A stretch of DNA of 64,000 bases, from assembly GCA_904063045.1 (NCBI GenBank), contig CAJFCJ010000026.1, positions 722,964 to 786,963 of the forward strand, given 5' to 3'. The notes below the pieces were generated by a model. That model was not told the DNA's origin. It did no database searches and saw only the letters and a list, made by a program, of their open reading frames with translations. Every line of letters starts with the position of its first letter. The first letter of the stretch is position 1. Shown here one piece after another: positions 17,632 to 24,625 of this stretch. This DNA is from Dimorphilus gyrociliatus. Taxonomy: Eukaryota; Animalia; Annelida. The translations under genes were made by a program, and so were the position numbers.

Positions 17632-19102
17632 CTCTAACATTCCGTTCAATTGTATTCATTTTAAATTAGTCTAAGACGGAAAGAACAAACCAAGCAACAT
17701 TCCATTCAGGTAATCAGAATGCTCTTGGATTGGTCTATTCTTCGGACACTGTAGGCTTACATTCACAATTAAAAGTGCGTTTCGAATAATAAAACGGCCT
17801 TCGGTTAAGAGTTGGACAAAATAATTAATATTAAATAAGGGATAGCGATGAGGTCGCGTTAGGATATTCTTCTCCGGGATATCATTCCCTATCATTCTTT
17901 ATTTTTTTCCATATTATCTACGTTGTTTAAGCAATATCTTAGCTTTTCCCCGAATTCCTGTCCATATATAGATAGATGGATTAACAGAAGATTACATGCG
18001 ATCTTCTTATGATCATCCTACAAGACTGTTGATTTGTTGATTTGTTGTTCTGTTGATCTATTGATGAAGCCAATCTATCTCTTCTAAGATACTAAAATCT
18101 TGATAAGCCCAATCAAAAAGACGTTATTATTATATAGAAAATTGGTCGTTAGATTAGAGATTCGTATGATAAGAATCGTTCTTTTCCTTTCATTTCGCTA
18201 TTTACAACGCGTTCTATTCATTGACGGTAAATTGTAAACGAGGATAAGGAGTTGTATCATAGATATCCTTATTCGTCCTCGTAAATACAATCATTATTAT
18301 CCAACAAATGTTTCACCTTTTCCCGTGATCATCGTTGAAAAATGACCCAGAAATCGGATTCATCATTATTATCATTATTATCATGCAATTTTGAATGAAC
18401 GTTAAACGCCTTCTTTATACTCTTGTAGACGCCTTTTCATCATTCATACCCCTTCACTCTTCCTCCTCTTTACACTGTACATTTCAGTAATTTGTTCGTT
18501 TTCCTACTTTTTTCAAAGATAAGGGAGTTGTATGATAGATATCATTCATTTTTCTAAAAACTTGCAATTTGAACGAAATTTTCGTTTCGTATTTCCCACA
18601 AATATCACGCAAACGACAGAGTACGAAAAATAAGGGTAGACGCCTCAAAGTAACGCCATAAAACGGTAAAAAATAAGCGTTATGTTTAATCGTTATTTTC
18701 TCTTTGACAATAGCTTTTTAAAGGGAAAAAAAGCGAGTATCCATTAGTTTGGGGAAGGTAGAACAATAATTAACTGTGGGAAGAGAGTAGAACGATGGAA
18801 GAGAGGAGAAAATGGAAGATTAAGATTAGAGAATTTTTTACGAAGGATAAAAAAATCGAACCTGAAATTTGGACGATGAAAAGTATAAAAAAAGGTATAA
18901 AAGTTGTTTTTTAGTTGTTTACGAATTGAATTTTTTAAGTTGTCGAGTTTGACGATTGATGGAGATCCTACAATGGAAACCCCGTCTTATAAATTGAGTA
19001 TATGATACATTTGAACCCCCTTTCAAAATGTTGAAACTGTACTTAAAAAACGCTGCCAACGTGTCACTTGAACAGTATAAAAGGTGAGGCGAAAGCATTA
19101 GT
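17632..19102 (+). repeat. Left arm of ~1.47 kb inverted repeat
   Basis: Reverse complement of 23115-24625. Central ~1.1 kb is nearly identical and both ends are more diverged. Confidence 0.95.
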
Positions 19103-19880
19103 TGTCAAAAGTTTTCAGAATGATTGTCTAAAAGCCGAAGAAAGTCGAAAGCTTAAGCTTCAGCTTAAGCTAATGCTGAAGGGCATGGCGAAGCCTACGA
19201 AAGGCATTGAGCTGTCCGCTTTCGGTTAGAAAATGGAGTTTGCATAACGATTCACCGTAAGTAATTAATTTTAAATTGTTTGTCATGTATATATATATAT
19301 ATAAAGTTTGTTTGTTTGTTTGTAGCAATATTCTTCGTAAGTCTACTACGATGGTGTCTGTAGATAAGAGATTTCGAGTAAGTATTAGAATATTGAATAG
19401 AATTGTTGCTATGTTCTGATAATAGATTACCCAATTAGATCCAAAAATTTATCATTCATTCCCATACCAGAAATAAACTGAAGGTATTTTATGCCATCTG
19501 TCAAATTTTGGGGTCCGCGATGACCCCTCCTTGGTTGGTAAGTAGAAATTTGAATTTGAATAAGCGTTGATTATTTACTGAATGTTTTTGTTAACAGCCA
19601 GACGAGAGCGCCAAGAGGGAGGTTACAATAACCTCCCGCCACCCAGGATGTGAAACCTGGGTAACTTTGACAGATTGGCCGTTCTAGAAGAACATTTTTT
19701 CACGAACAAGGCCTAAGGAGAAAGCCCGAGCAAACTTCTTAAACAAAGCAATAAGAGCAAACAATAGCAATGAAAAAAGAGGAATAGGGGAAACCCGTAT
19801 TTTTCAAGACATCAATCAACTCTAACAAATACGTAACGAAACAATTAATAGCGTTCCTTTTTGACAATAAAATCTGGAAA
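19100..19880 (+). ncRNA. Putative spliced, highly structured lncRNA (exons ~19100-19256, 19326-19377, 19426-19537, 19598-~19880)
   Basis: TATAAAAG at 19076, three GTAAGT..AG introns of 69, 48 and 60 bp, GC-rich exons with many stems, no long ORF, AATAAA near 19865. Confidence 0.5.
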
Positions 19881-20365
19881 ACTAAAAACTATTTGACTTT
19901 GTTTATTTATCGATTTAGGTTTCTTGTTTCTTCTTCTTGTTTCTTTCCTATCTTTGGCACTCTTTTTGTCTCTGATGTTATTGAGGAATGTCGTTTGACT
20001 GACTGTTCTATACAGTTGTCGGCTCTTGTCTTTTTTACGAGTAGTGTCTGAGGTTTTAATCGATGATATTGAAATTCTTTATCCTCTTCTCTCTCTCTCT
20101 CTCTCTTTATAGCCTAAATCTAATAAGTAGATAGACAATTGTTATTAATAACGTTTACTTTCCAATTATTTCATAAACAAGTCTATTGGAAAAACTGTTG
20201 TCTTTGGAACTGTCCCTAAGATGGGTCACTGTTTTTTTAATCTAATCTATATATATTGAATAGTATAGTTTATGCGATATACTCTGTCAACTCTCACTTT
20301 TTATCCAACAGATGATTTGCGCGCATTGCTTTTGAAGAGATTTTTACACGCTTTTGTAGAGAGGA

Positions 20366-22519: not shown

Positions 22520-23110
22520 ACTCTTTTGATTTTGTTATACTCATTTATTTTGTTTTTTCTTTAAGCAAAAAGCGGGGAACGATATGCATTGCGATTAAAA
22601 ACGGGGACATTTAAAAACACACACACACAATAGACGCTTCAAGCGTCTAAATCGCGCTTCATCAACATAGATAACGTTGTCTCTTGATTTAGTAATTAGT
22701 AGTAGCTCAATCGTTTCTAGATATGGTTTCCATAGGATCTGTATCTTTATCGCTTCCAATCATCTTAGACAATCAATGATAAGATGAGAAAAAAAAACAT
22801 CATTCTCTACCGAAAGTGATGGCGCCATCACGCTACCAAAGTAAGTCTGACGCTATAAACAATAACACAATCAATATCATCACCATCAAGATAAATTCAA
22901 TTACTTACGAAACAATTCCTATTCCAGATTGTCGTGCATCAACATCTGACTGGCTGGTCGGAAAACTGCAAAATTCAAACTATTTAGTACAAACATTTTA
23001 TATTTAAAACATACAAACTTACCGTTTTCTGACCAACCATTCTCGACTATTCCTTCTTTCTAACCCTCGGAAGGGTTTTTTCAAACCAAAGATAGCCTGT
23101 AGAAGACTGT
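22520..23110 (-). ncRNA. Putative spliced hairpin-rich transcript (possible 37-aa micropeptide MVGQKTFEFCSFPTSQSDVDARQSGIGIVSVRLTLVA)
   Basis: TATA box at the inner end of the right arm, introns 23022-22980, 22908-22853 and 22810-22739, AATAAA near 22543, perfect hairpins. Confidence 0.45.
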
Positions 23111-23114
23111 CGAT

Positions 23115-24625
23115 ACTAATGTTTCTTTCACCTTTTATACTGTTCTAGTGACACGTTGGCAGCGTTTTTTAGGTACAGTTTCAACATTTTGAACAGGGGA
23201 AGGGGGGCGGTCAAACCTTATCCGTATTCAATTTATAAGACGGGGTTTCCATTGTAGGATCTCCATCAATCGTCAAACTCGACAACTTAAAAAATTCAAT
23301 TCGTAAACAACTAAAAAACAACTTTTATACCTTTTTTTATACTTTTCATCGTCCAAATTTCAGGTTCGATTTTTTTATCCTTCGTAAAAAATTCTCTAAT
23401 CTTAATCTTCCATTTTCTCCTCTCTTCCATCGTTCTACTCTCTTCCCACAGTTAATTATTGTTCTACCTTCCCCAAACTAATGGATACTCGCTTTTTTTC
23501 CCTTTAAAAAGCTATTGTCAAAGAGAAAATAACGATTAAACATAACGCTTATTTTTTACCGTTTTATGGCGTTACTTTGAGGCGTCTACCCTTATTTTTC
23601 GTACTCTGTCGTTTGCGTGATATTTGTGGGAAATACGAAACGAAAATTTCGTTCAAATTGCAAGTTTTTAGAAAAATGAATGATATCTATCATACAACTC
23701 CCTTATCTTTGAAAAAAGTAGGAAAACGAACAAATTACTGAAATGTACAGTGTAAAGAGGAGGAAGAGTGAAGGGGTATGAATGATGAAAAGGCGTCTAC
23801 AAGAGTATAAAGAAGGCGTTTAACGTTCATTCAAAATTGCATGATAATAATGATAATAATGATGAATCCGATTTCTGGGTCATTTTTCAACGATGATCAC
23901 GGGAAAAGGTGAAACATTTGTTGGATAATAATGATTGTATTTACGAGGACGAATAAGGATATCTATGATACAACTCCTTATCCTCGTTTACAATTTACCG
24001 TCAATGAATAGAACGCGTTGTAAATAGCGAAATGAAAGGAAAAGAACGATTCTTATCATACGAATCTCTAATCTAACGACCAATTTTCTATATAATAATA
24101 ACGTCTTTTTGATTGGGCTTATCAAGATTTTAGTATCTTAGAAGAGATAGATTGGCTTCATCAATAGATCAACAGAACAACAGATCAACAAATCAACAAA
24201 TCAACAGTCTTGTAGGATGATCATAAGAAGATCGTTTGTAATCTTCTGTTAATCCATCTATCTATATATGGACAGGAATTCGGGGAAAAGCTAAGATATT
24301 GCTTAAACAACGTAGATAATATGGAAAAAAAATAAAGAATGATAGGGAATGATATCCCGGAGAAGAATATCCTAACGCGACCTCATCGCTATCCCTTATT
24401 TAATATTAATTATTTTGTCCAGCTCTTAACCGTAGGCCGTTTTATTATTCGAAACGCACTTTTAATTGTGAATGTAAGCCTACAGTGTCACAAGAATAGA
24501 TGTGGCGTCTTTGATACTGAAATTGGAAAGAAAAGCATTCTGACTACCCGAATGGATTGATGCTTGGTTTGTTCTTTCCGTCTTAGACCATTTTAAAATG
24601 TATACAAATGAACGGAATGTTAGAG
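23115..24625 (-). repeat. Right arm of ~1.5 kb inverted repeat
   Basis: Reverse complement of 17632-19102. Confidence 0.95.

Follow-up and report, generated by a model that had tools for sequence, protein, structure and literature searches.

A 64-kb window of the genome of the annelid Dimorphilus gyrociliatus (contig 26, positions 722,964-786,963 of a 77.9-Mb genome in 349 contigs; the coordinates below are those of the window) contains two inverted arms of about 1.5 kb, which enclose a spacer of approximately 4.0 kb carrying an apparently intact lectin-like gene, paralogue C. The locus is an inverted segmental duplication specific to this site, and its assignment to a mobile element is not supported. 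The interpretation that we favor, with moderate confidence, is that a promoter region was duplicated in inverted orientation, that the center of the two copies was later overwritten by gene conversion, and that the copies drive different short RNAs. The arrangement appears unusual in that the duplicated unit would be a promoter whose end falls only a few bases from the predicted start, with three local paralogues placed before unrelated short RNAs.

Divergence profile of the inverted arms

We compared the arms by repeat search, MAFFT and blastn, and all three recovered reverse-complementary sequences at 17632-19102 and 23115-24625 with 95% identity over 1514 columns, as proposed in a preliminary description of the window. 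The arms had also been described as near-identical midway and diverged at both ends, and this was confirmed when their identity was profiled by segment: there are 17 substitutions in the outer 118 nt (14.4%), 4 in the next 277 nt (1.4%), none in the 971 nt of the core and 19 in the inner 105 nt (18.1%). The repeat search delimits the core as 974 nt of 100% complementarity between flanking segments of 88-98%. The core differs from the edges (0/971 versus 36/223 substitutions, Fisher p = 5e-28) and from the 1.4% segment (p = 0.002). Every arm-to-arm difference, comprising 40 substitutions and four indels of 23, 8, 10 and 2 nt, lies outside the core, the outer edge of which lies at an 8-nt microsatellite that differs between the arms (5 versus 6 units). 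The inner limits of homology fall at 19102/19103 and 23114/23115; at the outer ends the homology fades without a sharp limit.

No conserved open reading frame (ORF) was found in the arms. The sole arm ORFs of at least 60 amino acids (aa), at 17671-17895 on the minus strand and 24339-24560 on the plus strand, are frame-broken between the arms, and the outer-end ORF is 74 aa long. Given these broken frames and the near lack of splice donors, we rejected the arms as coding sequence or as part of an outward-reading gene.

The diverged edges together with an unchanged 974-nt block are best explained by an old duplication, the center of which was recently overwritten by conversion. The proposed starting point is a local inverted duplication of an upstream (promoter) region of approximately 1.5 kb, which would be old because the edges are 14-18% diverged. 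Intrachromosomal gene conversion from arm to arm would later have homogenized the middle, leaving 1.4% divergence across 277 nt and none across 974 nt, and the 1.4% zone may represent an older conversion tract. We infer conversion here from one genome only.

A gene-converted palindrome had been put forward earlier as the other model, and it fits the strongly uneven identity profile. At this single site, a unique spacer is flanked by inverted arms, and a tract-like identical block is embedded in older divergence; the locus can be classed with, and behaves like, the small palindromes or inverted segmental duplications that are maintained by gene conversion. Conversion between arms is established for palindromes, including those of primate and mouse sex chromosomes (PMC8600007, PMC8327919). 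Like the locus described here, these palindromes each occupy one locus and consist of two inverted arms separated by a unique spacer that carries a gene, and their arm identity is far above what the age implied by the diverged edges would predict. Their arms span 10 kb to megabases, in contrast to approximately 1.5 kb in Dimorphilus, and the arms on this annelid scaffold are devoid of genes, consisting of an upstream region that extends as far as a predicted start. The inverted-repeat locus of C. elegans hsp-16 is a further comparable palindrome. Inverted repeats can also mediate recurrent inversion via non-allelic homologous recombination, as do the int22h repeats at human F8. With approximately 1 kb of perfect inverted homology around 4 kb, the arms could likewise flip the spacer; the locus differs from that type in that gene C keeps the orientation of its tandem paralogues.

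Candidate promoters facing the spacer

Directly before the inner homology limits, both arms share GCCAACGTGTCAC (at 19055 and 23160), TATAAAAGGTGA (with TATAAAA from 19076 in the left arm) and CATTAGT. The previous statement that the homology stops just past a shared motif block ending in CATTAGT thus holds at both limits. The first T of TATAAAA lies 27 nt (left) and 25 nt (right) before the homology limit, pointing into the spacer in either case, and the chance of such a placement at a homology boundary is approximately 1%. In the left arm, the TATA box is followed by CA, TA, TG and CA dinucleotides at 19097-19108, with a mirrored arrangement in the right arm; in both arms the TATA box is located about 30 nt ahead of a pyrimidine-purine initiator. 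The TATA box and the upstream motif are contained in a 66-nt island of 94% identity, whereas the rest of the inner end is 18% diverged.

These features resemble the known promoters of D. gyrociliatus, which are narrow, combine a TATA box at -30 with pyrimidine-purine initiators, and have most of their regulation inside the 1 kb around the start (PMC7854359). The same study described a genome of 349 scaffolds in which the median intron length is 66 bp, trans-splicing is absent and Mariner and MULE transposons occur, and provides CAGE-seq, ATAC-seq and RNA-seq data sets (PMC7854359). An inward promoter at each arm is plausible but unproven. As the inner end of each arm falls 25-27 nt past an inward TATA box, the copied unit would be a promoter without its transcript.

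Immediately inside the arms lie two single-copy stretches that we consider candidate transcripts, unit L on the plus strand and unit R on the minus strand (Table 1). Unit L holds 4 of the 17 plus-strand GTAAGT sites of the window, all within 19257-19538, and none on the minus strand (Poisson p = 8e-5). Unit R holds two minus-strand sites within 22908-23022 (p = 0.013); the background is 0.27 GTAAGT per kb per strand in the 64-kb window. Both units contain AATAAA polyadenylation signals in inward orientation, and their longest AUG-initiated frames are 14-18 codons. No Rfam family was found in the L/R region, the only matches being three tRNA-Cys genes even at E <= 5.

We scanned 17.6-23.2 kb on both strands for RNA folding in 120-nt sliding windows, for which the background z was -0.1 +/- 1.0 with a minimum of -3.0 (49 windows). 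The two strongest outliers fall at 19580-19700 in L (z -4.2 to -6.6) and at 22940-23060 in R (z -4.4). The hairpin in R lies approximately 70 nt downstream of the predicted start of the right arm and encloses the first GTAAGT...CAG interval, a putative first intron. This element may be a hairpin of the pri-miRNA type, or else an intron that is zipped through pairing of its exons. The most likely reading is that each arm initiates inward transcription of a short, structured non-coding RNA. Each promoter copy would drive a different intron-bearing RNA of this kind with a strong hairpin, L on the plus strand and R on the minus strand, and the two units would converge on the intact gene C.

A third, diverged and probably older copy of the conserved arm block was found 4.4 kb past the outer end of the right arm and 155 nt downstream of a tRNA-Cys gene. 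In all three copies, the block occupies positions of about -255 to -110 relative to the predicted start (within 10 nt), and the sequence between block and TATA box has diverged. No homology was found among L, R and the third unit beyond a splice-donor-like 37-mer, which was equalled by 2 of 200 shuffles. The preliminary description had placed two unrelated spliced transcripts in the spacer; their unrelatedness is upheld, while the transcripts and their splicing are predictions from the sequence. Its view that each arm is an upstream region firing inward stands as far as four sequence statistics carry it, namely the TATA position, the donor orientation, the polyadenylation signals and the third copy.

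Outside the right arm, at a distance of about 300 nt, is a tRNA-Cys gene oriented like the promoter of that arm, and another lies upstream of the third block. Unlike these two copies, the left arm has no upstream tRNA-Cys gene. The locus may have been built by repeated local inverted duplication of a unit made of tRNA-Cys, promoter and short transcript, in which case the right arm would remain in the ancestral context and the left arm would be a later, promoter-only copy. We infer this order of duplication events from the present arrangement.

The three tRNA-Cys(GCA) genes score equally and form a tandem pair with an inverted partner around a 3.3-kb segment, which includes a Ly-6/QVR-like exon (25732-26085, minus strand). 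This arrangement is an older inverted duplication nested beside the arm repeat.

The promoter reading has to be weighed against the possibility that the duplication is real and gene-converted but consists of neutral intergenic DNA, in which the boundary TATA box and splice-like motifs arose by coincidence or a single arm alone is an active promoter. We regard this explanation as possible but rather unlikely. Several observations do weigh against inward promoters and their RNAs. In this AT-rich genome, TATAAAA occurs 0.61 times per kb per strand, and TATA boxes are nearly symmetric and common at 30% GC. Units L and R lack both a conserved ORF and relatives, and their candidate status rests on motif statistics and folding. 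The structured element in L folds equally well on the minus strand, and L could equally be 5′ untranslated region (UTR) exons of gene C. Coincidence, however, has to account for three independent inward signals that agree with one another: the TATA placement, the strand bias of GTAAGT in both units and the polyadenylation signals. In addition, the third paralogue keeps its upstream block at the same spacing from the TATA box, and the TATA-bearing island is better conserved than its surroundings.

If both starts are true, the locus would represent a clean promoter-only duplication: within a highly compact animal genome, one 1.5-kb regulatory module kept identical by conversion would serve two unrelated non-coding RNAs. 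It would then bear on how new transcription units, hairpin RNAs included, acquire promoters, and on the part that local inverted duplications play in shaping a cluster of fast-evolving lectin-like genes.

Lectin-like gene C between the arms

The spacer had been said to hold an intact lectin paralogue, and gene C does thread as six exons separated by GT-AG introns of 81, 91, 84, 64 and 69 nt, giving a predicted 568 codons plus stop. The model was derived from the reading frame and coordinate arithmetic, and the exons were searched one by one. Gene C is colinear with the 558-aa DgyrCDS5505 and shares its orientation with paralogues A (about 2258-4098) and B (about 8206-9900), to which it stands in tandem; the exons of paralogue A at 2578-4095 are identical to CAD5125449.1 (DgyrCDS13667). 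A HMMER search with the largest exon of C retrieved five representatives among 1.84 billion proteins, three of which are annotated Dimorphilus proteins. No protein in this representative library is at least 50% identical to that exon, and gene C therefore appears to be absent from the deposited annotation, i.e. it is probably missing from the public gene set of D. gyrociliatus.

At the Pfam gathering cut-off there was no match to gene C, the best being F5_F8_type_C_2 at E = 0.13, and the full-length paralogues are also without a Pfam domain. A profile of the full family matched nothing in the PDB; only the profile of the N-terminal, first exons of A, B and C matched F-type lectin structures (4gwi, 3le0 and 2j1r; E = 1.5e-4 to 1.7e-3). 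The AlphaFold model of exon 3 (pLDDT 65, pTM 0.64) resembles the folds of CBM32, discoidin and eel fucolectin with TM of 0.5-0.6. These matches suggest that gene C belongs to a lineage-specific (Dimorphilus-specific) family of secreted proteins with galactose-binding or F-type-lectin-like domains. Between B and C, a short ORF at 13658-13894 resembles the penultimate exon of the family, which suggests a decayed paralogue.

The left arm could instead serve as the true promoter of gene C, in which case L would supply 5′ UTR exons, while the right arm co-fires the antisense unit R and ties the output of the gene to an antisense or hairpin RNA. We saw no promoter common to the paralogues A, B and C; gene C has no other strongly conserved promoter that it would share with A and B, and good acceptor sites occur just before its ATG. 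The polyadenylation signal of R at 22549 is approximately 90 nt from the stop codon of C, and the 3′ ends of the two therefore probably abut or overlap. The absence of C from the public protein set also accords with a sense/antisense cassette. Nevertheless, L has AATAAA signals of its own at 19472 and 19866, and a TATA-like run at about 20250 lies just upstream of C. On balance, we consider such a cassette unlikely.

An extended form of this idea, which we hold to be distinctly improbable, is that the identical promoters constitute a natural double-promoter cassette. The two promoters would fire together because all of their regulatory input is common to both, and the convergent RNAs, one of them with a miRNA-like hairpin, would silence or tune gene C; the 4-kb spacer might also flip in the population. 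The locus resembles convergent gene pairs and cis-natural antisense transcripts in having two candidate units directed inward, the 3′ ends of which probably meet beside or inside the 3′ end of a coding gene. It differs from such pairs in that the two predicted promoters are copies of each other.

Assembly error, mobile elements and further features

A false inverted join or a collapsed repeat might account for the perfect identity over 974 nt. This is very unlikely: substitutions and indels separate the arms outside the core, the 4-kb spacer is asymmetric and unique and includes an intact gene, and the position is approximately 740 kb into an 866-kb scaffold, away from a contig end. Moreover, the identical core of 1 kb is shorter than a typical long read.

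Long inverted termini around host-like genes also recall transposons, and a MuDR/Pack-MULE or foldback model had been offered as an option. MuDR carries inward-reading promoters in its terminal inverted repeats (TIRs). The genome-wide search of the arm for copy number and target-site duplications (TSDs), which had been suggested as a check, returned only this locus and no TSD. In the 77.9 Mb, the two arms are the sole matches to the complete arm, to its outer 171 nt and to its core, and motif searches allowing up to 3 mismatches found local copies only. An Infernal sequence-only profile of the best-conserved block gave three significant matches, all local (E = 3e-34, 3e-34 and 5e-26), followed by one at E = 0.056. 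The genome thus contains two arms and one remnant of approximately 150 nt. No direct repeat of at least 7 nt is present within +/-40 nt of the outer boundaries, where a single misplaced 6-mer was found; neither ORFs nor Pfam revealed a transposase, reverse transcriptase or recombinase in the spacer, the spacer ORFs being lectin-like exons only. The earlier remark that TSD and transposase are lacking is thereby borne out. TRF detected only arrays of microsatellite size in the arms, with no tandem sub-repeat architecture.

Pack-MULE and other MULE elements were rejected since the arms share no TIRs or terminal motif with other members in the genome, no 9-11-bp TSD is present, and the spacer gene is complete rather than made of captured fragments. 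A foldback element was rejected because the arm occurs at a single locus and lacks tandem sub-repeats, and a DIRS-like retroelement because the spacer has no reverse transcriptase or tyrosine recombinase gene. Although MULE and Mariner elements are known from this genome (PMC7854359), the single-copy arms, the lack of a TSD, the fading outer homology and the complete, intron-bearing resident gene in the orientation of A and B make capture of a host gene by a non-autonomous DNA transposon with 1.5-kb TIRs scarcely credible.

Table 1. Window coordinates of the features at and around the inverted repeat
Feature	Positions	Strand	Description
Left arm	17632-19102	+	Non-coding upstream-type sequence; putative promoter points right, into the spacer; no GTAAGT on either strand
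Identical core	18027-19000	+	100% match to 23225-24198; probable recent gene-conversion tract
Left core-promoter candidate	19055-19103	+	GCCAACGTGTCAC, TATAAAA at 19076, CATTAGT; homology ends 27 nt after first T
Unit L	19104-19890	+	Single-copy non-coding candidate transcript; GTAAGT at 19257, 19337, 19378, 19538; AATAAA at 19472, 19866
GC-rich structured element in L	19486-19685	.	13-bp closing stem, three hairpins; z -5.4 for 221 nt; single copy; no Rfam match
Lectin-like paralogue C	20366-22461	+	Six predicted exons: 20366-20645, 20727-20960, 21052-21519, 21604-21786, 21851-22078, 22148-22461
Unit R	22520-23113	-	Single-copy non-coding candidate transcript; GTAAGT at 23022, 22908; AATAAA at 22549; tail-to-tail with gene C
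Hairpin in R	22948-23042	-	95 nt, unbranched; minimum free energy -28.3 kcal/mol, z -5.4; single copy; no Rfam match
Right core-promoter candidate	23114-23160	-	Same motifs as left; homology ends 25 nt after TATA start
Right arm	23115-24625	-	Reverse complement of left arm; putative promoter points left, into the spacer
tRNA-Cys(GCA)	24933-25004	-	About 300 nt outside right arm, same orientation as its promoter
tRNA-Cys(GCA), second copy	25390-25461	-	Tandem with 24933-25004
tRNA-Cys(GCA), third copy	28799-28870	+	Upstream of third block
Third diverged block	29025-29172	+	74% identity to arm block 18847-18989; TATAAAA (29249) 77 nt downstream

The window contains a second inverted repeat at 56253-56687 and 58538-58972 (within 56154-58990) with 81% DNA identity. 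Its arms are convergent paralogous ORFs that are 73% identical over 137 aa and have no Pfam domain, and they bracket a rhodopsin-type GPCR gene (57171-58241, plus strand). Duplications of this local, inverted kind seem to be common in the genome. A GC-rich patch (38%) at 10800-11650 contains broken gag-like ORFs and is probably a retroelement remnant. On the minus strand, 29650-38334 is occupied by a large polycystin-1/REJ-like gene, which has very long exons and PKD, REJ, PLAT and PKD-channel domains.

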